Below, one piece after another: positions 3,151 to 62,139 of a DNA stretch of 64,000 bases. The stretch lies in contig SMSO01000035.1 of NCBI GenBank assembly GCA_004764695.1, forward strand, positions 496,001 through 560,000. Reading direction: 5' to 3'. The position numbers were made by a program, and so were the translations under genes. The notes under the pieces were generated by a model. The model searched no databases. It saw nothing but the letters and a program-made list of their open reading frames with translations, and had not been told where the DNA came from. Positions within the stretch are counted from its first letter, which is position 1; every line of letters starts with the position of its first letter. The DNA comes from Schizochytrium sp. TIO01. Lineage: Eukaryota; Protista; Bigyra: Labyrinthulomycetes.

Positions 3151-5329
3151 GGCGACGAAGAATCCGACTTTCGCTTGACCTCTTATACCTCTCGCGAAGC
3201 TTCTCAGTCTTGCGAGCGATGATAGTTCCTGCGTGCGTTTGGACTCCTGCCAAAATGACAGAGTATGTGACGACGGTGATGACGACTTGCTGAAAACCTC
3301 AAAAAGACAGAGCTTTGCAAGCTCTTCTGTTCGGCTCTTAGGGTACCGATCTCCCTCCCTCTCTTCGCAGGCAGTCTAGCCCGGAAGAGGCCGCAAAGCA
3401 GCGAGCGGTCACGTAGTGTCCTTATGCGGGTCTGCCTGCTGCAAAGAGAAGAAGAGGCAGTGAAGGACGGCTTTTAATTTTACTTTTTAGTAGAACATAT
3501 TACCTTACTAAGAGTAGTAGATACCTAGCTAGAGTATCATTTGACAAAAGCATCACAAAATCAATTTGATCAGTATTTTTGGTTGAAGATATAAAGTTGT
3601 GATATTGACTAGTCCAAAATGATTGCGTTGTCTCGCCCGCTGCTGCTGCTGCTGCTGCTGCTACTACTTCTGTTACCGCTTCAAGAACTTGGATTTCGCG
3701 TCTGATTATTATTCACAAAAGAAGCATTTATGTAGTGAAGCTTATTCAGCCGATCAAACAAGATGTTGATAGCCCTTAACGAAGAAATCAAGCCCAAACA
3801 AGAACGAAGTAAATAGCAATTATTTATAGCTGTATTTGACCTTTCGACCAAAGTTAAGCTAAGACCCGATTTTGGGTCCCTTTCCCTTCCTCAAGAACTC
3901 GGTAGGATCAGTCACAAGCTCGATGACAGGAAATAAATATTACAGCAGCTTAGCGCAAACATTATGTAGATGTCATCCCATACAACTCCTCCAAATCTCT
4001 ACAATCCGCATCTTAATCCATGATTCTCAATCTCCAATCGAAAAGATCAACCTCTTAAAGACAGCACAACCAACCAGAAGAAGGCGCTTCCTTGAGTTGT
4101 CAGCAGCTTGAAGTGCATATCGCTCAATACAGTATTTATATATGTATGTATACTTTAAAAATTAAAAAGGAGGGGCAAAGATCCTGATAGGAAGAACGGG
4201 AGAGGCGCTCGAAGTGAGGCCGGGCACCACTATATAATTGAAGTTCGAACACTGAGTTGAGTCTCTTTCCGGGAGCTCATTGCAATGCTGGCGGCCATCT
4301 GTCTATGTCAGCACCTGCTGTGGAGATACGAGCAGATAAACTCATAGGGAAGGGTTCTGTTTCACTCTTGGACAAGACGAGTTGGAATCACTTGCCTGCT
4401 GCTACGGACTTGACTCATCTTCCGCCTTTGAAGGCTGGTGAGGGGACACGTCTGACTACTCGAGCGTTAGAGGGGTTTCGTTTGCGCGCTGCCTTGCTTG
4501 GCCAGAGTTTGCACGCCCGAGTGTACATACCTACTACCGTGCTTCATGGTGGCATGGTCTCCGAATTGGAGTAGGTAGATATTCATGGCGATCATCCAGC
4601 AGAGAGAGGTCAAAGATTGCACCAATGTCAAGGTTCCGGTTGCTGCGATATGCCGCCACTGGTATGTCTCGAGATGATCATTCTCACTGCCAGCTCGTGA
4701 GCAAGGTTTTTTGTTGCGGGTCTTCGAATAGAAAAACAAACACCTTGTCATTCATTCATATACGGAGTTCCAACCCTAAAGCTGCACAGGATCGCTGGTA
4801 TTCATTCGCTCATTCGTTCGTTCGTCTACAGCGTGTAGGTGTACCACAGAAATGGCTCGATTGCAAGCCATCGCACAAAACTAATATTGGCATCTTGCCA
4901 GAAGTTAAAACACAGTTCTGTTTCTATTCTTTGTAGTAGGTACCGAGATCCCGTGCACCTCACCAAAAGACTAAACGAATATCCGAAGACATACGAATAT
5001 TGGGGCACGTGTTCATCCCTGTTCAATTGTGTTTGCCCATGGCTTATTAGATAAGGCGTACCACGAGGTAGGTCTTTTCCGCATGCTTTGATTCGTTTCC
5101 TGTTTTGCCACTAAAAACTTGAAAGAAACGCAAAATGTTGTACATGCCGCGGTTGTTCCTTAGCACTCAGGCGAATACTAAAACAGAAACATAGTTTTAA
5201 AGTACATACCGACTATGTCTGTAACTAATATTTAATTTTATTTAAAAAAATCGTACTTAAAAAATAAAGAGAGTATGGCATCTCGCAGGAAATCCAATTC
5301 CGTAAGCGCCGTCGCCGCATCTCTCGGCG

Positions 5330-6976
5330 ATGGCGGATCCTCGCGGGGCCGGCGCCATGCCTCCTAGACCGAGACCTGAAAACTCTGTCGCTTCTGCTGC
5401 CCGTCTTGCCGCTGCTGCGTCCCACGCTAGTGGTCATGGCAAGACAGGAGCACCTTTGAGCTCTTCTTCGTCACCTTTCACTTCTTCGACAGCAAACTCC
5501 TCGCCTTTATCAAAGTCGGCATCGAGCAGGCTGCCAAGCTTGACAAGCTCCTCGGCTCCATCAGATTCATCCAAGGCGGGATCATCTGGATCTTCAGCAT
5601 CGGCTTCTTCGCCAAATCCTATGACTACGAACGCAGGAAGTGCTGCCGCGTCCGCCGCTGTTGCAGCTGCTGCAAATGGTGCTCGAGCAGTCTCTCGGCG
5701 CCGAAAGTCATTGCCACCTGTAGTCCGGGAAGATGCGGCATCGATCTTGGGTGGATCTCAGGCTCGAATTGGTATGAGTTTGATCTTATTAGGTATAGCT
5801 TCTGTGGTCCGTTTTGGGAGTGCTGAGGCCATGAGTGGAGTTCTGTCTAGGTTCCTTGCAGCTGAGGGTTTGGTGCAGTTTAGCCTAGCGATGTGCCTGC
5901 AGCCGACTTCTTCTTTAGATACCCCATACCATATTTTGCTTACCTTGTGTGTGGTGGCAGGTCTCTTCTATAAGCTACCTATTGAGCTGACACAAGAGGT
6001 AGGCTGGGTTCTTTGTAGCATATTCTGTGTTCCCTTTGGCTGCGTTTTGTTATGGCAAGGCGCGCTCAACACGCAACTAATGTACCATCTTTCCCCGGGA
6101 TATTGGAATTTCTCTTTCGAGAATAGGCTCGAGACTCCAGGAGGCAGCGGGAATGCTTCAGCATCTCGAACGAGTTCTGTTACTCGAGTAAATGCAGGTA
6201 GTTCCAATGGAAGGTTTGCGCTTTTGCATGCATCGCCTATGTCCTTGACTGGAATTCTTGCAGTGACACAAGTCATGGTCCAATGGCTTGAGATTGGCGG
6301 CCTCAGTGACTCTGATCGAGCCATTCTGATTCAAGCGCGAAACCATTTCCTGTTTCGAGTTCGCAACTCTTCTTCATTGCGACATAAAGCAATCGCAACG
6401 GAGCTACTTTTCCGGGTCGTTGCAGGCTTGCTTATGCAACATACTGCACAACAAATGGTGGAGCCTAGTGGTCCTGTATCTACAACAATCGCTTTCATGG
6501 AGCAACAATTTTCGGAACGCTTACTTCAACAAAGTGAGGTTTTTATGAAGCCTTTGCCAGAACCTCTCGACCCAGATACTGCGTTGAAGTTGGTCATATT
6601 TTCTTTTGGTGGGCTGCTATTCCACAAACGATTCTTTAAATCCTTGAAAGAATTCCAAGGAGGGTCTTTACATCCTGCTTTACAAGCTGTGAAATACGTA
6701 ACGCGTTTCTCCATTTTGGTGTACCTAACAAGTCGCTACCTGATCATTCAAAGCAGGAGGAATCGTTTGCAAAATGATCATCTCGCAAATCGATTCAGTG
6801 ACCCTGCAGCTAGAGCATACTTTGAGGGAAGGGCCAGTCGTATCCGCCTTGATCAATCTGGTGCTCATAGCTCAGGTGCTTCAAGTGGATCGTCTTTAAC
6901 AAATTCGACGGCAGGAACGCCAAGCTCTCCACGGGGAGGAAGGCAGACATTCACGCCCCCATCAATGTACTTGTAA
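5330..6976 (+). CDS. Hypothetical multi-pass membrane protein with Ser/Ala-rich N-terminus
   Basis: 548-aa ATG-initiated ORF between AT-rich spacers, with several hydrophobic segments. No family recognised. Confidence 0.7.
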   Translation: MADPRGAGAMPPRPRPENSVASAARLAAAASHASGHGKTGAPLSSSSSPFTSSTANSSPLSKSASSRLPSLTSSSAPSDSSKAGSSGSSASASSPNPMTTNAGSAAASAAVAAAANGARAVSRRRKSLPPVVREDAASILGGSQARIGMSLILLGIASVVRFGSAEAMSGVLSRFLAAEGLVQFSLAMCLQPTSSLDTPYHILLTLCVVAGLFYKLPIELTQEVGWVLCSIFCVPFGCVLLWQGALNTQLMYHLSPGYWNFSFENRLETPGGSGNASASRTSSVTRVNAGSSNGRFALLHASPMSLTGILAVTQVMVQWLEIGGLSDSDRAILIQARNHFLFRVRNSSSLRHKAIATELLFRVVAGLLMQHTAQQMVEPSGPVSTTIAFMEQQFSERLLQQSEVFMKPLPEPLDPDTALKLVIFSFGGLLFHKRFFKSLKEFQGGSLHPALQAVKYVTRFSILVYLTSRYLIIQSRRNRLQNDHLANRFSDPAARAYFEGRASRIRLDQSGAHSSGASSGSSLTNSTAGTPSSPRGGRQTFTPPSMYL

Positions 6977-7574
6977 GAGTTCGTCTGGCAACAAGGTTTG
7001 ATATGTGAGACAGTTCACGCTTTTATTTATATATAATCAAAAACTAATTTTTATTTGCATGCACAGTTTCAAAATCAATCAAGATAGTCTATTTTGCAAA
7101 TTCAGATTTCTTTCGCATAAGAGTTTTTCTGACCTCACAAAGCAAAAGTTGTAGAAGTCAAGTGACAAGATACAACATTTCCATTGAAAGATGGTATGGA
7201 AAATAATCTCCCAAGGCAAGGCAGCACATCAGTTTAGTCCAAAGAGACAAAGTAGGTATTGTTTGTTTGGTAATAAGTTTTTAAAAATTAGTTTCCATAC
7301 CATTATTTACTGTGAGCAATGTCGGATCAATTCTAGGGTAGAACCTTTCTCATGTAATATATGTGTACACATATAAACCGAAGAGAAAGAGATTAAGCAG
7401 AAGCTCTCGCACCAGCCTCGCAACCAGTATACAGATTAGTGAGAACGAGCGAGGTTTAGAGAGCTTTCGTAATACAGGACAGCAACCTTCTTCTTGTGGT
7501 TTGATACTTTCTTGAGAAGGGTGAAGTCGCAGCACATTTCCAATGGAGCATGATAGGCAAGGTCTTCACGTTGA

Positions 7575-7880
7575 TTATACAGTCTGAGGTTGGCACTGGA
7601 GCTGCTGCGGCGCTTCTGGAGTCTCTGAAAGGTCAAGTTTTAAGTTAGGTTTGCATTGCAGCTTGAACTTCTTATGCGTAGGTCCAAAGCACTTTCCGTG
7701 GCTTCGTCTACTGATGCATGGACGAGGCGCGAGTTCAGGTTGTTCATTAGATGCATCAAAAGCTACAATTGTAACAGATAATTGAGGACGCGTCCGTGTA
7801 AGAGATGAGCGCTTCAGAGAAAGGACGAGCTGGTTCAAGGCCGCTGCCTCTGAAAACTTGAAGTTGTTACGCTTGCCCAT
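7575..7880 (-). CDS. Possible small hypothetical protein
   Basis: 101-aa ATG ORF. An overlapping protein-like frame (7436-7636) may be its frameshifted continuation. No homology recognised. Confidence 0.25.
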   Translation of the reverse strand: MGKRNNFKFSEAAALNQLVLSLKRSSLTRTRPQLSVTIVAFDASNEQPELAPRPCISRRSHGKCFGPTHKKFKLQCKPNLKLDLSETPEAPQQLQCQPQTV

Positions 7881-10800
7881 GATTGAGATGAGAATTAAAA
7901 AATGTGAGCTTGGTTTCTGTGACTGTTGTCTGCTTCAGCTATGAAAAGAATACGACGAAGGAGCGTTTGTGTGTTTGTGATTTGCTGTGAAGATTTAACT
8001 TCAACTTATGCGTTGTATGTATCTCTGCGTCGTCGTGAATTAGTCAACTTCTGATTCAAGTGATGCGAAAGGGAATTTGTTTTGGCTTTCGCTAGCTTGA
8101 GCTCTCCACTTCTCCTCGACGTTGTTGTTACTTGCACTTGCTATGGAGTTCCGCCTCGTTTGACCAATCCAGGTGTATTCCCCTTCAGGTTTGATGGGGA
8201 AGCTGGCCGACCTTTACTGCGTCTTTTCTTTTGTCCCCGAAGCCTCAATGGTGTTGGGACAATACAAGACGGACGAAGTCACAGTCGGGAAGGAGTGCTG
8301 CTGCTCGTGCTTCTACTTTTTCAAGGCGTGTGTTTTCTGGCAACTCACTTTGTCGTGGACGCCTTTGGCAATGTTGCTTTGTAATTTGTTTGTTGCTAGA
8401 CAACGTATGTGGCGAACCACCAGAATTACAATTCGCCAGGAATGCGATTGTCAAGACAAAATGAAAGAGTGGGGGGGGGGGGTCGATTTTCCTGAGCGTG
8501 CGTACTTTGCGCGCGATGTCCTTAGATCTAGGTTTGCTGTCTGCTTTGGAGCTCGCGAACCGGCCTCTAATGCCCGCTGATTTTTATTTGCTATTTTTGC
8601 TCTATAAGAATGAATGAAGAAACCTCCAAGCTGCTTCTTCTTCTGTTGTTTCTTCTGTTTTTCGCACACCCAAGCGCACCTGAAAAACTGACAAACACAC
8701 TCTAATCTCGACAAGCTAGGAGTCCCTACGGGTTCTTATCGTTTTCCTGGTGTTACACGAAACGAGGAGAGCGGAAAAAAAACGAAACAGCAACTCTTAA
8801 ACAGATAAAAGGAAATAACCAGAAAAAACAGCGAGCTGTTTCTTCTCAGGCTATGTTCTCAGCCTCTTTAATCAAGGCGTATGCTCGCCCACGTGTCCGT
8901 GTTCCTGGCACCTTTGTATTCCTTCCACCAGCTGATCCGACTCCGCTGCAATGGTCGCACGTTTCGCAAAGCTCGCTTTTCTTTTCTCTCTCGACGAGAA
9001 AACAGCGACGGCTTTGTAAGTATTTAACCAAATGCCTACCTAACTCCTATGGTGTTTCTTAAAATTGACTCAAAACGAATGAATGGAACCAGCAATGAGC
9101 GCGTACGTTTCCAATGTCACCGGTTACCAAGCTCGCTCGTTACTCTGGCACTTCTGGAGACAGCTCGCCCAGTTACTACTTGGCCTCGTCACGCCTCTCT
9201 CACAGTGTGGGTCCGAGCGGCCAGGCAAGTTGTTTCAAGGTCAAAGTCCTTCTCAATTCGGGAATCCGAAGACGGTCTGCCTGAGTCTCTCCAAGCCTTC
9301 TTCTTTTATAAAAATTATAAATCCAGCAGTTTCTCGACAAGTCAAACCTCGGTCCCAGCTGCGCTGCACGTCTCTTTCGCTATATGATACTTGAGACGCG
9401 AGCCTACACGAAGAGCGAGAACCAGAGATAGCAAGCAAGCAAGCAAGCAAGCGAAAACTTAAAATTCGAAACAGCACGTTCAATCTCACTTCCAATCCGG
9501 TCAGATCGACTTCGATGAGGAAAACTGCGACGGAAACGACGCTCTTTATAATCGCACTCTTTCTTAGAAGAGTGTGCACAACCAATACTTTCTTCAAATT
9601 GCTTTTGGAGAAACAAACAAAAAGGACCCAATCACAAACTGCTTCTGCCTCGATATAGCGATGGTACAGCTCAGAGGCCTCGGCGTACGCTCGCACGCCA
9701 GGCGTTTCACTGATGGCTCCGTTTCAGGGTGCGATGCACGCAAATTGCTCTGTACGTTTCAGACGAATTCGAAGTCTGGATGAGGTTACCTTTCGCGTGA
9801 AGGAATATCAATGCGGGATTGAATCTGTTTTGATGATGAGAATAGTGCAGCTCTGATTAGGCTCTTCTCGTCGATGATGAATGCCACCTAGCTAGGGACC
9901 TACCTATGTAGTATTGTTCGTCTACGCCGTGTGAGGGTGGTGCTAGGTGCTAAGCTGCTATAAACGATATGCGAAGAAGGAGGACAGGTCTGCAAAGAAC
10001 TTGAGAATCGAACAAACAAGTTTTGCCCACCGACCCGAACTTTGTAACTTGCGACGACTTCGATAACCCACTCACCAACGACTACTCAAGTGAAACGAGC
10101 ACCCCAAGTAGTAGCTGCACTAAGAGGGTGCTACTGATTAAAGTGCGCGAAACGCGAACTTTAAAAGTCAGCAGCACCGCAGATATTCAATCTATGAATT
10201 TATGGATGTATGTCCAACGCTAAGCTGCAAGTGGCGATAGTCTTACTGTTCTATGTCTGTGCAGACGAGATGTCTTTGATGGAGACTTTTGATTAAAGAA
10301 ACTCCAACTTAACGCTCAACTAAAGAAATAACAGTCGTGGTTTCGTGTCTTTCAACAAAAGAATTCGTGATATTGAAAAAAAAAAAAGGCCTTTAGGAGC
10401 AAGAGACCCAAAGGTCCAGAGTAGCACGGCGGGAGTCGCGGCAGGGCCGTGCCGATGTTCAAAGCTCTATGGGCTGTAATGTTTCTTTTGCGAAAAGCAA
10501 TTCACAGATGGTTTGGTAACCAACTTTGAAATCAATGCAGAAGCACTTTGGTGGAGGAAGAAGACCTTTGGGTAATTGTTGAGCTCCTGAGCTCAAGTTG
10601 GAAGTCTGTTTCGCCCTGATGCCTCGCCGCCGATTACTGCCTGAATAGTACCTAGTACCTACGTAGCACTACCACGATAGATTGATGATTAGATGAAGGT
10701 TTCATCATACGTGCATGTACGAGATGGATCAGAAAGTACAACTGCTATATATGGATACAGTTCGTATGGGCGGGGGATTCATCCCTCGCTAGGAATACAG

Positions 10801-46145: not shown

Positions 46146-49100
46146 CTACCGTGAACCTGGGAGACCACGCCTAATATAGGTATTGACAAGATTACGCTTG
46201 TCCTGCTTCAGCATATCCAAATACGGAGCAAGCGACTCCTTGCCGCAGGTCTCGTTCATTTCAACGAACAGGTAGGTAGCCGCCTTGCGAACTTGTGTGT
46301 CACTGTGATCCAAGAATTCAATTAGAGCAGGGTGAATCTGAGTCAAAAGATCAAGCACTTTTTCCGAAGGCATACGACGAGTCAAAGCTCGCAACATATC
46401 AATGCAGGCATCCTGTGCAGTTACCGTTGGATTGCCCAAGACTTGCAGAATTAGAGGAAGGCATCGAGAAGGATCACAAGATTCTGCAATGAGCAGTAAA
46501 GGAGCTTTCATATAGTTGTGCACAACTACATCAGGTGTTCCCCCTTCAATGTTAAAAATGGCCTGAAAAATGTTCTCCACCAAGCTATCCAGTCCCTCAT
46601 AATGATGCTTCAAAAGTAGCTGGAGCAGGAGCAGCGCCTCGAGTTTAGCACTGAGCTCGTTCTGGTTCAATTCATCTATACAGGTCTGGGCAATTTGACC
46701 TGCCCAATAGTTGCTGTCAGAGGCTGCATTATGTCTGACATCTACCCTCGAAGCCCAGGAACTTAGCTGGTCCCAAGCAGATGCATGGACGCTAGCGTCA
46801 CTACTCTTTAGTTGTAATAAGAGCTGGCTCACGGTCGTTTCAAAGCTATTCAGATCTGCAATGGCATCTGCAGGTGTTGTTTGCTCAGGAGCTAAAGGGA
46901 ATATGGGTGGAGAGGACGACGCCGGTCTCATATCAAAACGCTGTGGTGTGAGAGGTTTTAAACTTGCTGCATTGACTCGAGGGCTTGCACGAACGGCCTC
47001 GACCTTTGTTTCACTTTCAATAGTCTGGAAAGGCGATCCCAGTAGAAGTTCTTCATGGTGGACCATTCCACGAGAAGCTGGGACGGGTGAATTGACATTT
47101 TCATGATCGTTGTGAAGCACATCAAACGGGTCAGTATCTGCTGGACTCTGGGTTAGCTCCGGTTGGGTAGCATCTTCATTGACTACTTTCAGCACGTGAT
47201 TAGTATCAAGTAATTCGATGGTCTCATCCTCATCTTGTTGATGCTCCTTCATATGTCTTGATGCAATGGAGCGCTGTGAAAGCTGTGATTGGGACCTACT
47301 CAAGCTACCCCGTGCACTACCTGGTTCCTGACGTGTTACGGAGCGCGGAGACTGAGGCGAAGACATCTTGTTTTGTGAGGCGAGGGTAGCTCCAGCGTAT
47401 TGGGGCGGCTGATTGGCACGAGCGTTTTCTAAGTGGGACCTTTTAGACTCATCGAAGTTTGAGATATTATCCTTACAAACCTTTTCTGCGCGATCACGGA
47501 CATCACCAGGCAATTCATTCGATTCAAGCTGCTGAACAAAAAGAGCTGGATCATGTTTGTAAACAGCAAGAAGGACGGCTGTGGCAGCTTTGCGCATATC
47601 GAGATTTCTTGAGGAGAGAGACCGATCAGCTCGGCGAATGACTTGAAAGACATGCAAGCCAGTGGTAAAGAAGTGGCGTGTCAGCGGCACAATCTTCTCA
47701 AGGTATTCCAGGGCAGCCAGGCGCTTGGAGTCTCCCTTTTGTTTAGAAAGCTCGCTAAGCATACCAGCCAGCAAATCGGCTGGAAAATGCTCGAAACACA
47801 GATCCATTGCCTCGCTAGAGAATCGTCGGATTGGTAGCTTCCCATCCTTTGTGCCGGCTAAAAGAGCAGGTACTAAAATCTTGAGGTAGTCACTAAAGTC
47901 CTTGGCATGTTTAGGAAGCATCAAGCAAATGCATTTCAACACGTCCTGTGCTACTTTGTGGTGGCGACGCTCATCAGCTGCTTTGGCGCACAAAGCAGGA
48001 ATCAGCTTGGCGGCAAAAACTGGCGGGAAACCGTTTGGACTATCCATCAATGCGCTCATGATTGCCTCCACCGCGTCTTTTCTTGCGGACCAATGAGGGT
48101 TACTTTCAAGCTCCCGTAAGTGAGCAGTCAGGCTGCCTACTGAGGCGGATGCTTCCGATGCTTCACTATGCGCGTAGCCAGGAGCAGGCCCGCTATTGGT
48201 GGCAGAGAACGAGAACTGAGATTGAGACCGAGAGTTCATTGGCTCCCGCAGGGCAGCGCGCTCAGGGCGCGGGCCTTGTGTTTCGCTGCTGTTGGTCGTC
48301 GTTACAGAAGCACCAAGATTTTGCTCGACCCTCTTTGCAAACCCCATTGTGGAACGGGGTTCCTGCAGCGCTTGTTGTTGCGTCTGCTGAGGCAAACCAA
48401 CAGTACGCGGGGGTCTTGTTGCTACGCGTTGAGCACCCATAACGCGACGAGGACCGTTTTGAGAGCGGGTAGGCTTCGAAGAGGCATCTGCGTAGTCCCC
48501 AGGTTGGTAGTCGCGAGTGTCTCGGCCCTTTAGCAATGGCGAGGGTTGTGCTTGGACGCGTTGTGGGCCAGAACGCATTGGGCGTCCGGCACGAAGTCCG
48601 TGCTGTGCATTGGCAGAAGCGCCAGCACTTGCATCGGAGGTCTCGCTTGTTGCATATGACGAAGGTGCCGCTGGCGACACATGTTGATGAAATCCTGAAG
48701 AAGAACTTCGTTGAGATGGGATTGGTGAAGCTCCGCGTTGTAAGCTGCCTTGTGAACCTCCGCTACTTACAGTGTCAAAGTCGTTCTGGAAGTCCTCGTT
48801 AGTCTTGAAAGACAATACATCAGAACGAAAAGAACCGGTATCAAGTTCGCTGGTAGTTTCCGACTGAAATTCAAGAGGGGAGAAATCATTAGGACTCGAG
48901 GCCGTCGTGGGAAGGCTGCTCATGCTACTTGTGGCTGGGTTTTTATTGCCAGACGCCAGTTTGCGGTCCTGGCTTGAGGCAGGAGACACACGGACACGTG
49001 GGCTCAAGTCGGCTTCAAATTGTACATCAGACTGGGCGGCAAGCAAGCGTCGCTGACTAGAGCTATCAAGTCGTTTCATGATAGGCTCAGCAAGCTCAGG

Positions 49101-49910
49101 GCAGCGTGCGTGGAAAACCCAGTAGCAGGATCGTGCAGTGTTGCGGTTCTTCTCGTCTGCATCAGAGAGTGCTGTTTGTACGGCTGCTCGGACTTCAGTC
49201 AGGCGCCGGGTGTTTGAAGAGCGCATTATACCGGACCATTTGCGTAAAATAAGGTCAATATATTCAATAGAGACTAGCCGAAGATGGCTAGCTTTTTCTG
49301 TGACAGCTTCGCAGCATTTAGAAAGAATTTTGCCAACGCCAAAGGGTGCAGCGCATTCAATGATGGCTCGAATGCACGAGTCTGCTGATTCTGAAATTAC
49401 CTTGATTGAGACACACGTCTGTTTCAAGCAAATCTCAACCGCTGCAAAAGCAATCGATGCAAATCGAGGCGACCATTTGTAGGTTCCTTGACGCACACCT
49501 TCCACCTGAAACGCGTTAGCAAATGCTGCAAACGCGCTGCTTGCCTCTTTGACAATCGTCGAACGGAGGTCCTTCAGTTGCCCACACAGTGGCTCGCGAA
49601 TACGAGAAAGATAGTCAAGAAATTCCTCATAGCCGGCAGCACCCTGTTCTGCGGCCTTGCGAAGCCGCTCTAATGCAAGCATTCGGTCCTTCCAGTCCAC
49701 TTCCTTTTTCTCCAGCACCTTGCAGGCAAATTCGCAATCGCGAATCACGTCTCGCAAGGGAATAGATGGCGATGCAGGGCCGCCTGGTGACCTCAGTGCT
49801 GCATTTGTTTCACATGAGACGCTCAATTGTGATTTTACGCTAGGGTCCTCCTCATTAACATTGGCGCTCATCATGAAGTTTTCTGTTTTATCATCCTGAT
49901 GGGACATCAT
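46146..49910 (-). CDS. CLASP: CLASP (CLIP-associating protein) family TOG/HEAT microtubule regulator
   Basis: DWKDRMLAL...DLRSTIVKEA...SDADEKNRNTARSCYW (CLASP_N/TOG); S/R/P-rich linker; second TOG (WSARKDAV); C-terminal VRKAATY...LAPYL...LVNTYI. Confidence 0.88.
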   Translation of the reverse strand: MMSHQDDKTENFMMSANVNEEDPSVKSQLSVSCETNAALRSPGGPASPSIPLRDVIRDCEFACKVLEKKEVDWKDRMLALERLRKAAEQGAAGYEEFLDYLSRIREPLCGQLKDLRSTIVKEASSAFAAFANAFQVEGVRQGTYKWSPRFASIAFAAVEICLKQTCVSIKVISESADSCIRAIIECAAPFGVGKILSKCCEAVTEKASHLRLVSIEYIDLILRKWSGIMRSSNTRRLTEVRAAVQTALSDADEKNRNTARSCYWVFHARCPELAEPIMKRLDSSSQRRLLAAQSDVQFEADLSPRVRVSPASSQDRKLASGNKNPATSSMSSLPTTASSPNDFSPLEFQSETTSELDTGSFRSDVLSFKTNEDFQNDFDTVSSGGSQGSLQRGASPIPSQRSSSSGFHQHVSPAAPSSYATSETSDASAGASANAQHGLRAGRPMRSGPQRVQAQPSPLLKGRDTRDYQPGDYADASSKPTRSQNGPRRVMGAQRVATRPPRTVGLPQQTQQQALQEPRSTMGFAKRVEQNLGASVTTTNSSETQGPRPERAALREPMNSRSQSQFSFSATNSGPAPGYAHSEASEASASVGSLTAHLRELESNPHWSARKDAVEAIMSALMDSPNGFPPVFAAKLIPALCAKAADERRHHKVAQDVLKCICLMLPKHAKDFSDYLKILVPALLAGTKDGKLPIRRFSSEAMDLCFEHFPADLLAGMLSELSKQKGDSKRLAALEYLEKIVPLTRHFFTTGLHVFQVIRRADRSLSSRNLDMRKAATAVLLAVYKHDPALFVQQLESNELPGDVRDRAEKVCKDNISNFDESKRSHLENARANQPPQYAGATLASQNKMSSPQSPRSVTRQEPGSARGSLSRSQSQLSQRSIASRHMKEHQQDEDETIELLDTNHVLKVVNEDATQPELTQSPADTDPFDVLHNDHENVNSPVPASRGMVHHEELLLGSPFQTIESETKVEAVRASPRVNAASLKPLTPQRFDMRPASSSPPIFPLAPEQTTPADAIADLNSFETTVSQLLLQLKSSDASVHASAWDQLSSWASRVDVRHNAASDSNYWAGQIAQTCIDELNQNELSAKLEALLLLQLLLKHHYEGLDSLVENIFQAIFNIEGGTPDVVVHNYMKAPLLLIAESCDPSRCLPLILQVLGNPTVTAQDACIDMLRALTRRMPSEKVLDLLTQIHPALIEFLDHSDTQVRKAATYLFVEMNETCGKESLAPYLDMLKQDKRNLVNTYIRRGLPGSR

Positions 49911-54010: not shown

Positions 54011-54790
54011 ATTAGATACAGAGAGAGAGACGAAAGAAGCACTTGAAAGACCACCGAAGGGAGTTTGGAAGGAAAGGGATTTGGAAGGAAGGATGGAAGA
54101 AGGGAACCAATCAATCAATGCATGAGCAGTTCCTATTTCTGCGATCAACTTTCTTCGAGTTCCTTCTTTTCCTTTTCCTTTCCCCCCTCTGAAAAGAGGA
54201 GGGCATTCAAAGTCGTTGCAGCAGCCAGGACGCTGAGGAAACAGCTGTGACGATCCGCGCATCTGCGAGCGTGTAGGGATCCATCCTACTACTCTAGAGA
54301 CACGGCTTGCTAAGAAGACCACGATAACCTCAGTCTTCCATTCAACGAGACAGTTTCTGGTTGAATTTGCATTTGCGTTTGCAGTTCGTTTTGGACAGTA
54401 GCTACGACTGCTTGCTCTCCTCGGCCAAGGTTTTGCCAAAGCACACGATGGCTGCCGTTCTGACGTTCAAGATTGATCGATCAAACGAATTGATTGACCG
54501 TGGTGACCTGAGGACCCCTATATTACGGGACCCCATGTTCCCATCTCAGCCGTTCGAAAACACTTGTTCGCTGATATTGTCCCTTCAATTAGTGATTGAC
54601 GTGTCTGCTTTTTAATAAGCCTCTGTATAAACGCCAATCCGCAGAGCGACGGGACCCCAAGGAATTTCGAGTCAAGTTGTGGAGAAATCGAGCATGTAGC
54701 AACAAACAAACCCAGTTCTCTCCGCTATCCGTGATACATTGCCTGGTCTCCTGAAACTCTGAGCGAGAAGAATTATCGTCGCGCAGTATA

Positions 54791-57700
54791 ATGGGAGTGC
54801 TGCAGCGGCTCTTGTGCAGGCCTGGAAGAGGCTCTTCACAACGAGGTGGTGCCCAGGCCAGTGCAGAACCGGTGCCAGCATCGCCATCCACTTGCTCATG
54901 CAGAAGCTCGCAAACTCTGGTATCAGATTCAAACACAGGGGACGAAGAAAGCCACCTCCATTGCCTTAACCCAGACTTGAGGTCGGCTACAATCGAAAAT
55001 GCACATCGAAATTCAAACTCAGAGCGTCATTCCGCAATCTTCCGTAGAGGAAACGGTAGTGCAATGTCCTCAGGACGCAGAAGTGGAACTCAAAGACAAA
55101 GGGGTGATTCGTGTACTTCTGGTCCTATCATAAATGACGGAGGACACAACCATGGCAGAAATTGTGATACTGAGACTATGAATGGTGGGAATGAGTATGA
55201 ACGTTTCAGTGAAAGAACTGACGAGACAGATCGTCAGCATCCTCCAATTTTTGGACAGATCGTTGAAGAACTAGACCGTAGAAATGGGGATTGTGATCAA
55301 TATAGCAATGACTGTACAAGATATCATAGCGAGGAAGGCGAGGATGGTGAGGATGACGAGGTGGTCAACTCTAGGGCATCATTATCATCTACATGGTCTC
55401 CAAGCCTTGGACCCTTGCGTCGAGACAGTCTTACGGAATTATCTCAAACAAATAGCAGAGGCACCAATAGAGACGCACCCTGTAGAAGTAGGTGGCACGC
55501 TGCAGCCTTGGGTGCATGGAACTCTGAGGAAGCCCCTTGCATGAATGATCAGGCCACCTGGGAGGCTCTCCGACCATGCTTTTTGGTTAAGCTAAGCAAA
55601 GGCAAAGCGCGACTTCAACTTGACTCCAGGATTTGGCAGGATTTCAGCTCTAGTCAAGTGCAATTTTGGCCACTGGTGCAGAGGTCTAAACTTGCGGAGA
55701 TTAATCTAAGTGGTATTCTGCTTAACAACATGGCAGTAGAGATCCTTTCTGACCTTATCACTGATAACTTGCAAAACCTCCGCTCTTGCCAAATCGAAGG
55801 TAGCGAACTCCCTGGTAGAGGTCCAGCGGGTGCACTTGTGGAGGCGCTCGGGTGTCAAACATCAAGAATTGAAGTTTTATCATTAAAGGGAAGCGTTGTA
55901 CAGGAGTGTGGCAATCTAGTTGCCTACAGAGGCTCCATTTCGCATGACAATTTCTCTGGAGCTATTGACTTTGAAACCTGGTCAACAGTCATGCTCAAAC
56001 AAGTCATTCTGGCTGCAGGGTGCTGGTACTACGAGATCAAGTTTGAGCACATTGCAAATGGAGAGTATACGCAAATTGGGTGGGCATCTCAGGAGTTTGA
56101 ATGTCGTAGCTATGTTGATGGGGTGGGGGACGATGAGCATAGCTGGGCATTTGATATAGTACGGCGGTCTATCTGGCATAACGGCGTCGAAACTCCCTGG
56201 GGGGAACGTCTCGATGAGGGGGACACGTTGTGTTGCGTAGCAGATCTGGAAAATAATACTATTTCTTTTGGGTACAATGGATCATTCCTGGCACCCTTTG
56301 GTATTGCCTTTGATATTCCTCAGGGTCTTGTACTTCGACCTGCTATCACTGCTGGAAAAGACATGCGTCTCACGCTTAACACCGGATTTGACAAGATTGA
56401 ATATAGTCCGCCCCATAACGCATTGCCAATTTCCGAGTGGGTCGTTGGTGAACGTAGACTTGGTACACAGTGGCTGGTGGGAAGTCTTTGCCGCCTCGCT
56501 GCGCGACGAACGCTTCGTGTGTTAGACCTATCTAACAATGGATTAGACGCTTCTTCGCTTTCGCGCATTGCCAACGCTGCGCAAGCACTGCCCATCCAAG
56601 AATTATACCTTGCCGGGAATCATGCAACCCGCAAGTCGATTATGGCAATTGCATCCTTACTAGCAGAGACCAATTCTCTTCTGGTGCTGGATCTTTCTCA
56701 GAATTTTATTGGCTTTGATCACCACCCCGATGAGGATGAGCAGAGCAGCTTAGATTCAATGGCTTCTTCGCACGTATTGGACGGACTCCAACGCTACTTC
56801 TGTGGAGCTCTCATTCTTAACAGGACATTGCGCAGCTTGAATTTGGCAGGAAATGGGCTCAGCGAAGACGATACTGAAAATATAGCTCATGCAGTTATTG
56901 AAGGAAATTATCTCCGCACTTTATCCTTCGCAGGCAATCCAGTAAGTCAGCATATCACTCTCAAACTTTTGACTCAGGCAACTTCTTTAAAGGATCTTGA
57001 TCTTAGCCGTGTGGGAATTCTCCAGACCGACGATTCAGTTCGTGGAGAAAATGTAGACGTATATCATGAAGATTCTTTAAAAATATTAAGCCCTAACCTC
57101 AGACGCCTAATCCTACGTGGTAATGGACTCGGAAATCTGATAGATAGTCGCCTAGGCCTATTCCGTACCATCTTAAGTGCTACATCCTTGGAGGATGTGG
57201 ATCTAGGAAAAAACTCCATTGATCATCGGTTCGCAAATGACATTGCAGAGTTTATCATATCCAACCGGCGCCTACGTAACCTGAGACTGGATTCCAATTT
57301 GCTAGAAAGTGATTCCATGAATCAAATTTCTGAAGCACTGACGTCATCGAATCTAAGTGTTCTTGATGTGAGCGAAAACCCGATTGGTGCATCTTCCTGT
57401 GGATATCTGCTAGATTGCGCGAAGAACCTCACAACATTTTCTGCACGAATGTGTGAGATTGGTCTAGAGCCTTATGAAGATCAGTCCAAGGCACTCTCAA
57501 CATTGGCGTCCGCCATTAGCAGACACAGAACACTTCGCGACATTGATCTGAGTCAAAATGCTCTTAGAAATCCTGAAGTGGCAGCGCATGCTCTTGGGCG
57601 TGCTATTCGGGAGTGCCCCTCCTTGAAGAATGCAAAACTCTCTGCTATGGGATATGGTGCTGAAGGTGTACGTGAGCTGGTGTGGGAATTACTTCAAGGA

Positions 57701-59806
57701 CAAAAATTAGATACACTTGATCTTTCAGAAAATGATGCCACGCATAAAGGAATGCTAGACCTCATTAGTTTGGTCATGGACAATGAGCGGGCCTTAAAAT
57801 TATTAAAGCTTGGCGGGAACTCAAATAGCTCAGTTCTTATCACAATCTTAGAAGTCCTTGCTGCAGCACCGTTCTCAATCCGTACAGAGCTGCTTCGAGA
57901 TATTCTTCTAACTAATCCAGATAGGCCACAGGAACGGCTCAGTACTTATATTGCGGAGAATCCATCCCGTAGAGGACTAGTATGGACACGAAGAGGCCGC
58001 GATGTCGCTGAGAAGGAGTTGACTTCGTTGAGAGATTTACTCAAACGAGTGCGCAAAATTGAAGCGAGAGAGTTGTGGACGGTGCAAGGTGGGCTTCACT
58101 TTCATAATGTCGACCAAGATATCGAGCTTGATCCATCTTTTCAAATTTTCGAAGGCGAGCTTTGTTTTGATGACTGCCGAGGTGATATAGTATTGCCCCA
58201 AAACTTGTATATTGATGGGTTTCTGAATTTTATGCGCTGTACTGGGGAGGTAGTCTTAGCTCCGGGTCTTCATATTGCTCAAGATTTCAGTTTAGATGAA
58301 GTACCTCGGCTGACTGAATTGCCTCCAGAAATGTCGCTTGGAGGGGCATTTTTTGCCATAGATTGTGAAGAGCTTGCTGACATACCTGAAGATTTTCAGC
58401 AAGCCCCAGACCAAATCTTCGTTCTTCAACGTTGCCCTAGCATACTTTTTATTCCTGATATCCTTGTATCCTCGCCAGGACGCATTTTTCTTCTTCAAAC
58501 GGGAGTTGATGGTAGCGAAATTGAGCGTTTACAAGATATTGCTCACCCGGGCATGGCTATTCGGAGCACCAATTTTCTTTCTCAGTATTTCTTCCAACCT
58601 CAATTCCCTACTCTACAGTCTGCTGTGAAATTCTGGGCATCTCGAAGCCGGATGCCGGAAGGCCCGGCAGACCGGTTTGCACGAGATGTGGAAAAAGCTG
58701 TGAGTCGTTATTTCCGGGAAAGCGTCACTCAATTTCTGGCAAAGCTACGAATGTCGAAAGAGTTCACAGAGGAGACTATGCGCGAAGGTCTTGCACGTCG
58801 AGTTGTCCAAGTACTACGCTTTATTGTCGAAGATTCAAGTGTTCGGGAAGCTTTGTTAGTTCGAATGAGTGATAGCATTGATGCATGTGGTGATAAGCCA
58901 ATATGGGCGCTCAACCAGATGCATGCAGTCATCGCTACCGCTAGAGCTCGAGGTAATAAAGAAGCCCTTAGACGCTTAGGCTGCGGAATGATGCGCCTCG
59001 GCATTGTACATGAGCATGCTCGTCGAAAAGTATTAGAGCTTCAAAGACAACGGCATGAAGCCTGGGAACGTAGCGGAGAGTCTCGAAGTCACCCAGATAC
59101 GAGTGGGGACGTTGATGAAATATGTGTATATCTCTTTTTTGAAATCGAGCTTCGTGAGAGGTTGGATCTGTCGGTAACAGCAGAACACATGCTTTTCCCC
59201 AACTTTATTCATATATCTGCTGCAGAAATTAACGCAGCTGCAGAAGAGGCTGAAAATATTTCTGAAGAAGACTTCGAAAGGTGGTTAACAACTTGGCCCG
59301 AATGGCAACGCCAAATGAGGTTGGAGTTGGCGCAGTCAATGACATGGGAGTCGTTACCCGCAGCTCGAATACCAAAACGTGTCAGCTTGAGCCAAACAAC
59401 ATTTCTTGGTGATCCAATGACAGAACCTGTACTACTGGGAAAGGCAGGCCCTTGGCAATTCGATGAACTTTTGGACCGCTGGATAGAGACAGGTATGGAT
59501 TTCAACAATGTTACCTGGAGGGTCGATGAGTTTTCAGAAGAGTTAGGCCGCGTTGAACCTGCTTTTCGATCTGCCACACGTTCCTCAATATCGTCGCTAG
59601 ACAGTGATTTTGACCTCGAGGCACGCAATCGTGGACTTTCATATGCTTCCTCTGAGACAAAACATTCATCCTTGGAGAATTCCAAATCTCGCAGATTTTC
59701 TTTGCGAAAATTGGCGCAACGCGCTTCTCTTCCAGTTTCACGTCGAAGCCAAGCGCGGCATGAACAATTTCTTGCAGAAAATACTGAAGACAATGACCTG
59801 ATGTAG
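54791..59806 (+). CDS. LRR-SPRY-LRR-NEL (IpaH/SspH-type novel E3 ligase) multidomain protein
   Basis: RNI-like LRRs (LRVLDLSNNGL, LYLAGN, LNLAGNGL). SPRY: WYYEI...QIGWA...GVGDDEHSWAFD...GDTLCC..DLE..TISFGYNG. NEL: FLAKL...DACGDK..ALNQM...LGCGMMRL...VDEICVYLFFEIELRERLDL..AEHMLF...WLTTWPEWQ. Confidence 0.85.
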   Translation: MGVLQRLLCRPGRGSSQRGGAQASAEPVPASPSTCSCRSSQTLVSDSNTGDEESHLHCLNPDLRSATIENAHRNSNSERHSAIFRRGNGSAMSSGRRSGTQRQRGDSCTSGPIINDGGHNHGRNCDTETMNGGNEYERFSERTDETDRQHPPIFGQIVEELDRRNGDCDQYSNDCTRYHSEEGEDGEDDEVVNSRASLSSTWSPSLGPLRRDSLTELSQTNSRGTNRDAPCRSRWHAAALGAWNSEEAPCMNDQATWEALRPCFLVKLSKGKARLQLDSRIWQDFSSSQVQFWPLVQRSKLAEINLSGILLNNMAVEILSDLITDNLQNLRSCQIEGSELPGRGPAGALVEALGCQTSRIEVLSLKGSVVQECGNLVAYRGSISHDNFSGAIDFETWSTVMLKQVILAAGCWYYEIKFEHIANGEYTQIGWASQEFECRSYVDGVGDDEHSWAFDIVRRSIWHNGVETPWGERLDEGDTLCCVADLENNTISFGYNGSFLAPFGIAFDIPQGLVLRPAITAGKDMRLTLNTGFDKIEYSPPHNALPISEWVVGERRLGTQWLVGSLCRLAARRTLRVLDLSNNGLDASSLSRIANAAQALPIQELYLAGNHATRKSIMAIASLLAETNSLLVLDLSQNFIGFDHHPDEDEQSSLDSMASSHVLDGLQRYFCGALILNRTLRSLNLAGNGLSEDDTENIAHAVIEGNYLRTLSFAGNPVSQHITLKLLTQATSLKDLDLSRVGILQTDDSVRGENVDVYHEDSLKILSPNLRRLILRGNGLGNLIDSRLGLFRTILSATSLEDVDLGKNSIDHRFANDIAEFIISNRRLRNLRLDSNLLESDSMNQISEALTSSNLSVLDVSENPIGASSCGYLLDCAKNLTTFSARMCEIGLEPYEDQSKALSTLASAISRHRTLRDIDLSQNALRNPEVAAHALGRAIRECPSLKNAKLSAMGYGAEGVRELVWELLQGQKLDTLDLSENDATHKGMLDLISLVMDNERALKLLKLGGNSNSSVLITILEVLAAAPFSIRTELLRDILLTNPDRPQERLSTYIAENPSRRGLVWTRRGRDVAEKELTSLRDLLKRVRKIEARELWTVQGGLHFHNVDQDIELDPSFQIFEGELCFDDCRGDIVLPQNLYIDGFLNFMRCTGEVVLAPGLHIAQDFSLDEVPRLTELPPEMSLGGAFFAIDCEELADIPEDFQQAPDQIFVLQRCPSILFIPDILVSSPGRIFLLQTGVDGSEIERLQDIAHPGMAIRSTNFLSQYFFQPQFPTLQSAVKFWASRSRMPEGPADRFARDVEKAVSRYFRESVTQFLAKLRMSKEFTEETMREGLARRVVQVLRFIVEDSSVREALLVRMSDSIDACGDKPIWALNQMHAVIATARARGNKEALRRLGCGMMRLGIVHEHARRKVLELQRQRHEAWERSGESRSHPDTSGDVDEICVYLFFEIELRERLDLSVTAEHMLFPNFIHISAAEINAAAEEAENISEEDFERWLTTWPEWQRQMRLELAQSMTWESLPAARIPKRVSLSQTTFLGDPMTEPVLLGKAGPWQFDELLDRWIETGMDFNNVTWRVDEFSEELGRVEPAFRSATRSSISSLDSDFDLEARNRGLSYASSETKHSSLENSKSRRFSLRKLAQRASLPVSRRSQARHEQFLAENTEDNDLM

Positions 59807-60281
59807 CCCGGAAAACTTGATCAAACGTGTTTGATACCAGGTTTGTAGCTTTATTCATTATCAACATATCTGTATGCATATATTAAGAGTGGCATTCTAT
59901 ATGATGATCAATTGTCGCCAAGAAGTTCTAAAAGGATCTTGTGATCGTAATACTTGGTTGTCTTGCAATTTTGTATATAGTATATAAGTAATATTCGAAA
60001 TTTCTTTTTTTTGTCAAAACAAATATGTATGTCGAGGAAATGAATGCAAAATCATTTGTCACAATATGACTTGTGTTATGGCTAATATTTTTTCAGTGTA
60101 AGAACGCATGGGTGCGATAGAATACATTGAGTGTAATCCCACGACAAATATGGAAACGTGCGCTACCCATTGTAAACAAATATATGATATGTTATTTATC
60201 CTTCATGATTAGAACGATAAAATCTCTCTTTGTGTGAATGTATTGAAATTATACCTTTGTCTGCACGTTTAGTTCGTGTAC

Positions 60282-61052
60282 TCAAATTTGCATCTGAGGA
60301 CGTCTTCCAAGGCCATTTGTTGGAGCAGAGGATGCGAGTAATCCTGCTTGTTCCGCACTATGGGAGTTATTTTCATTGCCAGAGATGTTTGTTTTACCAG
60401 ATGTTGCAGAAGATGAGGTTGTATAGAAAGAAGTTACCTTAGAGCCATCTTCGTAGCCCTGTGATTGCATGCCACGCGTAATTACATTCAACCTAATTGT
60501 CACCTCACCGACTGATTCAACTCGTGTTGCTTCACGGCCTTCTGATTTGGATACAAATCTAGAATCGTAAAACTCAGGTTGTAGACCTCTGACCCAGGCA
60601 AGAAACTGTTGCAAGTACGATTTGCAGACAGGTCTGAAAAGTCTCACTTTGCGAGTATAGGTGCCAGGTCGAGTAGGGATATGAACAGATCCATATCCTC
60701 GAGCAATATCACGACCCAAGCCATCTATTTTAAAAACACTGACCACTAGACGCGGCCAACCGTGTGCATTAAGACTTTTGAAAAGAATCTCGATCGGAAA
60801 ATTCCACACAACAGCTGTATCTGGTCCTTCTACCTTGTTTGCAATCTGTGAAATTCCTTTGTCAACGCCTTGAATGATCTCCCAATGCTTTCCATATGTA
60901 AAATCGTACTTCACATAAAGTCGATCCTCGCCTCGCAAGTTTCCTGACTCTACCTGACCTGTAGCGCTAACTAAGAACCCGATGCTACTGTTTTCATTTT
61001 TGTCTATCGCTGCTTGGGTTTTTAGTGACTTGGTGAGGGATAGCAGATCCAT
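60282..61052 (-). CDS. B9D1: B9 domain-containing protein 1 (ciliary transition zone, MKS module)
   Basis: GQVESG...G.SQIA...VVWNFPIEILFKSLNAHGWPRLVVSV...DGLGRDIARGYG.VHIP..PG...PEFYD..FV...EGREATRVES.G. The first ATG is at 61052. Confidence 0.9.
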   Translation of the reverse strand: MDLLSLTKSLKTQAAIDKNENSSIGFLVSATGQVESGNLRGEDRLYVKYDFTYGKHWEIIQGVDKGISQIANKVEGPDTAVVWNFPIEILFKSLNAHGWPRLVVSVFKIDGLGRDIARGYGSVHIPTRPGTYTRKVRLFRPVCKSYLQQFLAWVRGLQPEFYDSRFVSKSEGREATRVESVGEVTIRLNVITRGMQSQGYEDGSKVTSFYTTSSSATSGKTNISGNENNSHSAEQAGLLASSAPTNGLGRRPQMQI

Positions 61053-62139
61053 CTGGGATAACTGCCTTATAAGTCTATACAATTGTGACTTAGCCGCGCC
61101 GTCCTACCGCCAGACGTTTTATCGTAGCTTGCAATTCCACGCCTCGTTGCGTAGCTTACTCAAATGCTTGAAGCGAAGGCTTACTTTCCAACCCTTCCTT
61201 TGTTCCCTCGGGCTGTTAACGTTTGTCAACCATACACCAACGAAGAAATTAGGTTTCTGCAATACAACTTTCGATTGCTGGCCCAGGAGGCCTCGTTCGG
61301 GCCCTTTATTAACGAGATCTACTATTTACTCTATGCTGGTCACCCTGGTTCTTTGTCTGACTCAACGGTTCTTGTTAATCCATGATATTCTAGGTTTAAG
61401 TTTTTGTGCGTTCAACGGATCTGCGATGTTCTCTTTTTGTGCTTTTCCCGAACTGTTGCACACCATAGCTCGCCTTTTAACTTGATTACCTATATTTGTA
61501 TAATAAATTAGTGATGTGAAAACACTCAATCTGTGAAAGTATTATATCAATTTGACTCACATGATCAACCTGTTAAGGAACATTAAAGAGTTAGAGGAGC
61601 TTATAGTTTGATTGGCGAAGTTTGTCTTATTTTCTCTTAACAAAGATTTTTCAAACCCTTTTTTTTTATTTGGTGTATTTCAAGGTTTTTCATTCTAATG
61701 GAGAAGGGGAAAATGGGAATACACAAAGCGCTCATCAAAACTAAATTATGTTGTGACATATTTTTCCTTTAACAGATAATTAATGAATAGTTTGTACTTA
61801 TGTTCCCAGAATGAAATGGAGGCCGCCAACTACCGCAAAAGGGCAAGTGTAGCCTGATAGAAACAAGGTGAAGTTGAAGTATCGCAATTGTGATCAATCA
61901 GCAGTAGCTGCATGCGAGTTCGCCTTTTGACGATTGCTGGATGGTTGTGACCCAATAAAGAGAGAGCCAGAGGACGTGCAAAATTTCTTACCAGGATCTG
62001 CTACTATCGATCAAGCAGAGACTGTATACATAAGAAAGTGCACCAAACCAAAACTCTGGCGACGTGAAGCACCTACAAGCTATATTCTAGCCTGTTAGAT
62101 AAAGATAGCTTTAAGTCATCTACCTCGGCTTGAGATAGC

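Follow-up and report, generated by a model that had tools for sequence, protein, structure and literature searches.

The 64,000-nucleotide stretch analysed here (the window; Schizochytrium sp. TIO01, contig SMSO01000035.1, positions 496,001 to 560,000) carries one uninterrupted, intronless open reading frame (ORF) at 54791–59806 on the forward strand, stop codon included, encoding a protein of 1671 amino acids (aa). The ORF belongs, as a resident gene, to the nuclear genome of a thraustochytrid-type labyrinthulomycete. Probably, to judge from sequence comparisons and models, its product is a cytosolic, multi-domain E3 ubiquitin ligase of the thioester-forming kind, and its last ~500 aa are a cassette of leucine-rich repeats (LRRs), a NEL catalytic domain, and a U-box-like domain derived from a chlamydia-like bacterium. 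An initial annotation, made from the DNA letters alone, had described the product as a bacterial effector-type NEL ligase domesticated in a eukaryotic LRR-SPRY receptor-like protein.

The joining of NEL, RNI-like LRRs, and SPRY in a single frame, as originally described, was recovered by Pfam. NEL (PF14496) matched aa 1312–1512 with E 4.5e-29 and 101.9 bits (curated cut-off 24 bits), SPRY (PF00622) matched with E 1.4e-15 and 57.9 bits (cut-off 26.3 bits), and LRR_6 matched with E 1e-5; neither NB-ARC nor NACHT was among the Pfam matches of the 1671-aa protein. LxxLxLxxN/C motifs of the RNI-type region occur at aa 575, 630, 680, 770, 828, 973, and 1002. The NEL motifs were all found as first listed (FLAKL at aa 1315, DACGDK at aa 1364, LGCGMMRL at aa 1396, VDEICVYL at aa 1441, MLF at aa 1467, and WPEW at aa 1502), together with the Cys1366 codon, and their joint presence is estimated to be far above chance. 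The "receptor-like" label, in the sense of a membrane receptor, was dropped. No signal-peptide-like N terminus or transmembrane segment is evident in the protein, and Kyte–Doolittle hydropathy in 19-aa windows does not rise above ~1.6. Because neither feature is evident, the protein is probably cytosolic.

The relationship of the C-terminal region to known NEL ligases was apparent in both sequence and structure. A phmmer search of the PDB sequences returned SspH1, IpaH, SlrP, and SspH2 (E 1.5e-7 to 2.4e-4), and NEL effectors were the only entries with meaningful E-values. In the alignment, ACGDK of the window protein lies opposite TCEDR of SspH1, which contains the catalytic CxD motif of NELs (PMC11354881). 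The Cys and Asp of this motif are invariant across 16 NEL domains of the genome and in a 50-sequence alignment of eukaryotic and bacterial proteins, and the Asp of the VD(D/E) motif is nearly invariant in the paralogues and bacterial relatives. The alignment with SspH1 and the invariance among the paralogues place Cys1366 at the catalytic position, as had been proposed.

An AlphaFold2 model of aa 1080–1610, built on an alignment of relatives, had a mean predicted local distance difference test (pLDDT) score of 89.1 and a predicted template modelling score of 0.74. Regular β-strands with pLDDT >90 in the LRR block at aa ~1102–1258 form an LRR solenoid, and most 10-residue blocks of the NEL domain lie above pLDDT 85. 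The seven top Foldseek matches in the PDB were all full-length LRR-NEL effectors (E 8.6e-10 to 1.1e-5), with SspH1 the best (8.6e-10) and SspH2, IpaH3, SlrP, IpaH1880, and IpaH9.8 among the others. Alignments to SspH1, SspH2, IpaH3, SlrP, and the rest covered 434–543 columns, longer than NEL alone, and the isolated IpaH C-terminal domain (3ckd) was matched with a template modelling (TM) score of 0.54. Profile and model comparison thus agreed on IpaH-type NELs, and the NEL identity suggested by the motifs stands. The profile, the position of the CxD Cys, the all-helical fold, and the immediately N-terminal LRR are those of the NEL family; a bacterial protein with type III delivery is not what was found, the gene lying in a eukaryotic chromosome. 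The window protein is accordingly classified here, by homology, as a member of the NEL domain family and not as a bacterial effector. A charged insert of ~20–25 aa (aa ~1416–1440, alignment columns 265–290; 59111–59140 region) separates the long helix from the VDEI motif in the window NEL; it has no counterpart in the 15 other paralogues, and its pLDDT is ~60.

The resemblance to bacterial proteins extends beyond the NEL domain. An exhaustive HMMER search with aa 1240–1560 against 1.84 billion representative sequences gave 390 matches, 67 of them below 1e-30, and the next tier comprised a large set of proteins of 470–890 aa with ~30% identity. These relatives consist of three parts: 20-residue Cys-containing LRRs (LxLxxCxxLTxLPxxLxVxGxL), a linker (I.L.GTGLS....RL....PG.QF) followed by NEL, and a conserved extension of ~60 aa C-terminal of NEL. 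All three parts are also present in the window protein, where the LRRs next to NEL are likewise Cys-containing repeats of ~20 residues (LxLxxCxxLxxLPxxLxVxGxL) that can be aligned with those of LRR-NEL proteins from the Planctomycetes–Verrucomicrobia–Chlamydiae (PVC) group. The captured unit appears from these alignments to be the whole effector body, namely the Cys-type LRRs, NEL, and the C-terminal extension, so the capture posited at the outset holds in extended form and not for NEL alone.

The extension was assigned as U-box-like. In the window protein its motif reads L-G-D-P-x-x-x-P-V ... W-x-F-x-x-L-x-x-W-I-x-T-G-x-D, in the protist family L-x-G-(D/E)-P-x-x-D-P-V ... W-S-x-x-x-L-x-x-H-W-(V/I)-x-T-G-x-D, and in the bacterial relatives C-P-I-S/T-x-D-x-P-x-x-P-V ... 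Y-D-Y-x-x-(I/F) ... G-T-(D/N)-P. A profile of the region searched against the PDB gave the U-boxes of Prp19, E4B, and LubX among its best matches, the top three included, but with weak E-values (0.05–0.6) that the unrelated TrwC, McrB, and sortase B reached as well. The AlphaFold2 model of aa 1518–1610 (93 aa; pLDDT 79.5) was more specific: nearly all of the ~36 listed Foldseek matches in the PDB were U-boxes, the last being an SP-RING. The best was E4B (2kr4; E 0.023, Foldseek probability 0.99), and Prp19 (2bay) was matched with a TM score of 0.74 and a root-mean-square deviation of 2.2 Å over 59 columns at 22% identity. The E4B U-box was also among the matches of the aa 1080–1610 model. The Pfam U-box model, at E up to 10, matched neither the window protein nor two paralogues and three PVC-group proteins. 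The domain is called U-box-like because the modelled structure supports the U-box fold while the Pfam model does not match. A profile of the domain matched 81 of 86 eukaryote-type relatives and 47 of 69 unnamed bacterial-type LRR-NEL proteins but not one of the 14 classical proteobacterial NELs, among them those of Shigella, Salmonella, a Yersinia metagenome-assembled genome (MAG), Bradyrhizobium, and Paraburkholderia. The domain is also carried by six of the seven PVC-group loci described below, and these six match by construction, having been used to build the profile.

The nearest bacterial relatives were located with an alignment of the bacterial-type proteins. When bacterial genomes were searched, the seven best loci (E 3e-58 to 4e-78) came from four MAGs, one assigned to the Rhabdochlamydiaceae, one labelled Verrucomicrobiae, and two unclassified, and six of the seven were matched through the U-box-like end. 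Proteins of Bradyrhizobium, Shigella, and Salmonella were matched only to the NEL end, with E 1e-19 to 1e-33. The contigs bearing the PVC-group NEL genes are bacterial, with one NEL gene lying beside an Omp85/POTRA gene. A profile of the protist family likewise scored PVC-group NELs at 128–160 bits versus 53–94 bits for classical NELs, and a homologue search with the protist NEL alignment gave 6 matches, Simkania and Bradyrhizobium among them. A pattern scan with the same alignment across 185,579 bacterial and archaeal species genomes produced 147 pattern matches and no relative, a result that speaks only against a close bacterial copy. In the MAG labelled uncultured Verrucomicrobiae (CAWEXY010000015.1), the LRR-NEL-U-box gene at 3851–6106 (L028:542-8389) directly follows sctU (FlhB/YscU family) and sctV (FHIPEP), and on its other side is a eukaryote-like Ser/Thr/Tyr kinase gene (PK_Tyr_Ser-Thr, E 4.5e-61). 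The arrangement resembles a group of type III secretion genes with candidate effectors. The Verrucomicrobiae label may hide a chlamydia-like organism.

Phylogenetic analysis pointed to the same group. A maximum-likelihood tree of 95 sequences was computed in IQ-TREE under LG+F+G4 with 1000 ultrafast bootstraps (UFBoot) and the SH-like approximate likelihood ratio test (SH-aLRT); support is given as SH-aLRT/UFBoot. All 48 eukaryote-type sequences formed one clade and the PVC-group proteins another (95.9/99), and the two were sisters with support of 98.7/99. Both clades, along with 19 unnamed bacterial-type sequences, were separated from the classical NELs and Simkania (95.8/96). The window protein grouped with its Hondaea, JGI, and NCBI orthologues (94.9/99). 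Rooting the tree on classical NELs places the eukaryotic clade within a set of bacterial NEL-U-box proteins, and a single bacterium-to-protist transfer is favoured because of this nesting. An old transfer from a chlamydia-like bacterium to a protist, with later expansion and domain shuffling, is the most likely history. The capture from a pathogen or endosymbiont envisaged initially agrees with the sister position of the PVC-group NELs.

The window gene is one of many. A six-frame PF14496 search of the 64-Mb, 37-contig assembly, in which the window lies in contig C34, gave 18–19 NEL matches distributed over nine contigs, and the open frames that hold them are nearly all long (500–3400 aa without stops, with one split by a TAA). 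The family is estimated at about 18 genes and at least 17. The idea of a captured NEL in this gene therefore stands, not as a one-off event but as part of an old, expanded family. In the 16 loci that were retrieved and compared, NEL lies at the C-terminal end, and its partners are Arm repeats, SPRY, many SAM domains, other LRRs, or nothing recognisable. Because most paralogues pair in the tree with an orthologue from another source, much of the expansion appears to be older than the divergence of these species. Three NEL genes, two on the reverse strand and one on the forward, lie within 17 kb on C24 (C24:1949952-1966773), and since the tree shows the first two to be close paralogues, recent tandem duplication is suggested for this cluster. 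On C31 (C31:2872556-2873105; ORF 7018–9231, forward strand, of L026) a NEL is split, with profile positions 28–162 in a 738-aa frame and 153–221 in a separate 143-aa frame and one TAA inside the match; this is probably a decaying paralogue. The forward strand of C3 encodes a very large NEL protein (L015:32-9664; NEL at 214587–215153), an open frame of at least 3468 aa with SAM matches at aa ~1151–1385 (SAM_2, E 1.1e-35) and a C-terminal NEL and U-box-like domain.

Orthologues, for which the initial annotation had proposed a search, were found in Hondaea and in other labyrinthulomycete-like sources. A search of 5.8 billion proteins with the window protein returned an identical 1671-aa protein (P0001, 100%) encoded on a 5261-nt Logan contig, a Hondaea fermentalgiana orthologue with 66% identity in the NEL region, and further relatives, with the SPRY-LRR-NEL layout in four, from Hondaea and three other sources. 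A protein-atlas search gave no usable match. The Hondaea orthologue (P0002, 2418 aa) is automatically named "Ryanodine receptor 1", evidently by way of its SPRY domain, and an ODAD1-like coiled coil at aa 1742–2019 follows the NEL cassette, for which reason P0002 probably represents a fusion of two gene models. The names "Importin subunit alpha" and "Disease resistance-like protein CSA1" are attached to other NEL proteins of Hondaea.

The gene is also present and conserved across independent material. At least 76% of the sampled words of the stretch were present in 23 public runs from 10 studies, and contigs from four runs were colinear with the ORF and showed no joints. In three runs guessed to be RNA, gene-sized contigs contained the ORF with 60–325 nt upstream and 165–215 nt downstream, while a DNA-like run extended beyond both gene ends; this pattern is in keeping with a single intronless mRNA with short untranslated regions. 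Within the ORF there were 31 single-base strain differences, 18 synonymous and 13 non-synonymous. The resulting ratio of non-synonymous to synonymous polymorphism (pN/pS) of 0.22 indicates that the ORF is under purifying selection.

Several observations weigh against parts of the account given above. The monophyly of the eukaryotic sequences is only moderately supported (88.6/86). The root on classical NELs is an assumption, which makes the direction of transfer conditional on it, and the 59 unnamed LRR-NEL proteins (P0079-P0150) are taken as bacterial from their size, architecture, and best GTDB matches. In the U-box-like domain, the protist proteins have Phe or Leu where loop 2 of U-boxes typically has Pro, and the assignment comes with weak E-values (0.02–0.6) and no Pfam match. 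The RNA status of the runs is a computed guess, so that transcription is only suggested.

The direction of transfer is the point at which another explanation comes closest. The NEL-U-box cassette could have arisen in labyrinthulomycetes or another eukaryote and been taken from their hosts by chlamydia-like bacteria. The U-box is typically a eukaryotic fold, chlamydiae have acquired and expanded eukaryotic ubiquitin-system domains such as F-box, BTB, and U-box (PMC4209131), and a midpoint-rooted tree merely splits eukaryote-type from bacterial sequences. However, NEL is widespread in Proteobacteria, where it occurs without a U-box, a short Cys-type LRR joined to NEL is the layout of a bacterial effector, and rooting on classical NELs nests the eukaryotes as sister to only one bacterial subclade. 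Reverse transfer is judged unlikely on this balance. A different concern is function: the gene may be real and its NEL no longer a ligase, serving as a helical scaffold or a ubiquitin- or E2-binding module while the LRR and SPRY regions act. Ligase activity is a prediction from homology, the identity to solved NELs is ~17–22%, and the insert of the window NEL is missing from the paralogues. Set against this are the conserved CxD and VD(D/E) residues in paralogues and bacterial relatives, the low pN/pS, and a confidently modelled domain, and the loss of ligase function is quite improbable.

A bacterial contaminant or assembly chimera was rejected. Resemblance to bacterial effectors is the sole ground for suspecting one, and the idea has next to no probability. 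NEL shares a single ORF with SPRY and RNI-type LRRs, the gene lies between CLASP and B9 genes, its GC content is similar to that of the rest of the window, at least 17 paralogues are spread over nine contigs, and orthologues exist elsewhere. Independent assemblies from the 10 studies are colinear, and the bacterial and archaeal genomes scanned by pattern contained no close relative. The contamination that the initial annotation had allowed for can thus be set aside.

Under the preferred reading, a chlamydia-like cassette working as an endogenous ligase, an old transfer would have been followed by duplication and by fusion to eukaryotic modules, here RNI-type LRRs and SPRY and elsewhere Arm, SAM, or other LRRs. 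NEL ligases pass ubiquitin from a charged E2 through a Cys to a substrate lysine (PMC9320238, PMC13720258, PMC11354881). The genome encodes a canonical E2 of the UBC4/5 type (L107:1489-1929). An E2~ubiquitin of this type would be recruited by NEL, possibly aided by the U-box-like domain, and ubiquitin would form a thioester with Cys1366 before moving to a lysine of the substrate. The SPRY domain is a candidate module for substrate or ligand binding, and together with the long RNI-type LRR region it could hold the substrate or an activating ligand. Autoinhibition by the effector-type LRR beside NEL, of the kind seen in IpaH and SspH, may hold the enzyme inactive until a ligand binds. The U-box-like domain itself could be an E2 dock in an RBR-like relay, a second ligase module, or a purely structural element; a predicted complex of the U-box-like piece with the UBC4/5-type E2 scored 0.00 with the supplied alignment unused, a result that does not bear on binding. 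Because the paralogues carry varied recognition domains, a role in immunity or surveillance is plausible, if speculative. A more far-reaching proposal is a hitherto unrecognised hybrid E3 module in which the U-box-like domain docks the charged E2 and the NEL Cys takes the ubiquitin, an RBR-like relay assembled from unrelated folds. It would have been invented by chlamydia-like bacteria and then diversified in labyrinthulomycetes into cytosolic sensor-ligases, with LRR, SPRY, Arm, or SAM as inputs and NEL as output, that serve cell-autonomous immunity; this is possible but rather doubtful.

The window protein shares with IpaH, SspH1, SspH2, and SlrP the LRR directly before an all-helical NEL, the CxD Cys at the aligned position, and the VDEI(E/C)VYL and W..W.PW motifs, and these effectors are its best sequence and structure matches in the PDB. 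It differs from them in being encoded by a eukaryotic nuclear gene with no secretion context whereas they are type III effectors, in its low sequence identity and its Cys-containing, ~20-residue LRRs, in ~1100 extra N-terminal aa with SPRY and RNI-type LRRs, and in the U-box-like domain after NEL. The PVC-group proteins are closer, having the same three-part cassette, LRR type, linker motif, and U-box-like end. They are, however, bacterial proteins of 560–820 aa, one of them encoded beside sctU/sctV, with 23–26% identity over the whole cassette and a U-box motif (C-P-I-S/T ... P-V ... G-T-x-P) that is more canonical than that of the window protein. If the U-box-like domain docks E2~ubiquitin and the NEL Cys accepts the ubiquitin, the arrangement would resemble the RING-type dock and catalytic Cys of RBR ligases; RBR and HECT folds are unrelated to NEL-U-box, and the parallel would be one of mechanism only. 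TRIM- and SPSB-type SPRY ligases and NLR-like LRR sensors also couple SPRY or LRR recognition to ubiquitin-ligase output, but they do so through RING or Cullin and not through NEL, and the window protein has no NB-ARC or NACHT match.

Reviews treat NEL ligases only as effectors that bacteria inject, without a counterpart in eukaryotes (PMC9320238, PMC13720258), as the initial annotation had also stated. A NEL-type domain in NLR-like LRR genes of the green alga Klebsormidium has been attributed to horizontal transfer (PMC7145615). Those genes belong to another lineage and have another architecture, and that paper mentions no family expansion, U-box, or chlamydial link. The literature search found no paper linking NEL or IpaH with thraustochytrids and none on a NEL-U-box tandem or on chlamydia-like NELs of this type. 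Recognition of the domain as such is not new, because databases already carry PF14496 on Hondaea proteins and automatic names such as "ipaH7.8" and "SlrP" on relatives. What appears to be new is a eukaryotic NEL family that has expanded and undergone domain shuffling and whose sister group is chlamydia-like, together with the NEL-U-box-like tandem, whose second domain, predicted from modelling, was previously unannotated.

About 18 NEL genes have been kept in a eukaryote, with its own recognition domains attached and purifying selection acting, which suggests that at least one eukaryotic lineage uses the fold as a ligase class of its own. The chlamydia-like affinity of the nearest relatives suggests that the donors were among the intracellular bacteria that labyrinthulomycetes harbour or once harboured, and this link could serve as a dated marker for the association between labyrinthulomycetes and bacteria. 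A conserved U-box-like domain that protist and chlamydia-like NELs share, and that IpaH and SspH lack, suggests a catalytic arrangement different from theirs. Since laboratory transformation has been achieved for some thraustochytrids, the function of these proteins is open to direct study.

The layout of the gene is given in Table 1. The N-terminal ~290 aa are probably disordered.

Table 1. Features of the NEL gene and gene-sized contigs in the window (positions on the forward strand of the window).
Feature	Position	Strand	Basis
N-terminal region, ~290 aa, Ser/Arg/Gly-rich, no recognisable domain	54791..55660	+	Pfam, composition
SPRY domain, aa 412–532	56024..56386	+	Pfam; kept in orthologues P0002, P0003, P0004, P0010
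Long RNI-type LRR region, aa ~560–1050	56468..57940	+	Pfam LRR_6; LRR_1 at aa 573–594
Effector-type LRR block, aa ~1102–1258, directly N-terminal of NEL	58094..58564	+	Alignment, AlphaFold2, Foldseek
NEL domain (predicted catalytic), aa ~1264–1516, all-helical	58580..59338	+	Pfam, PDB sequences, AlphaFold2, Foldseek
Cys1366 codon TGT in CxD motif (C-G-D), predicted nucleophile	58886..58888	+	SspH1 alignment
U-box-like domain, aa ~1536–1588	59396..59554	+	Profile against PDB, AlphaFold2 and Foldseek
C-terminal tail, Ser/Arg/Leu-rich, no domain, low model confidence	59558..59803	+	AlphaFold2, composition
Gene-sized contig, run X2 (guessed RNA)	54466-60019	+	Assembled contig
Gene-sized contig, run X5 (guessed RNA)	54714-59971	+	Assembled contig
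Gene-sized contig, run X1 (guessed RNA)	54729-60004	+	Assembled contig

The neighbours on either side are a CLASP_N/TOG protein gene at 46146–49910 and a B9-C2 ciliary protein gene at 60282–61082, both on the reverse strand, and genes for COPI-alpha and an ENTH protein also flank the NEL gene. The flanking genes had been named CLASP and B9D1; the CLASP_N/TOG and B9-C2 assignments agree with this, with the B9 paralogue being B9D1, B9D2, or MKS1. Immediately 5' of the start codon, a 3-base deletion at 54700 is present in one run, and the contig of another run starts at 54714 with 15 unmatched letters. These differences at 54700–54714 may reflect variation between strains, another 5' end, or noise in the assemblies.

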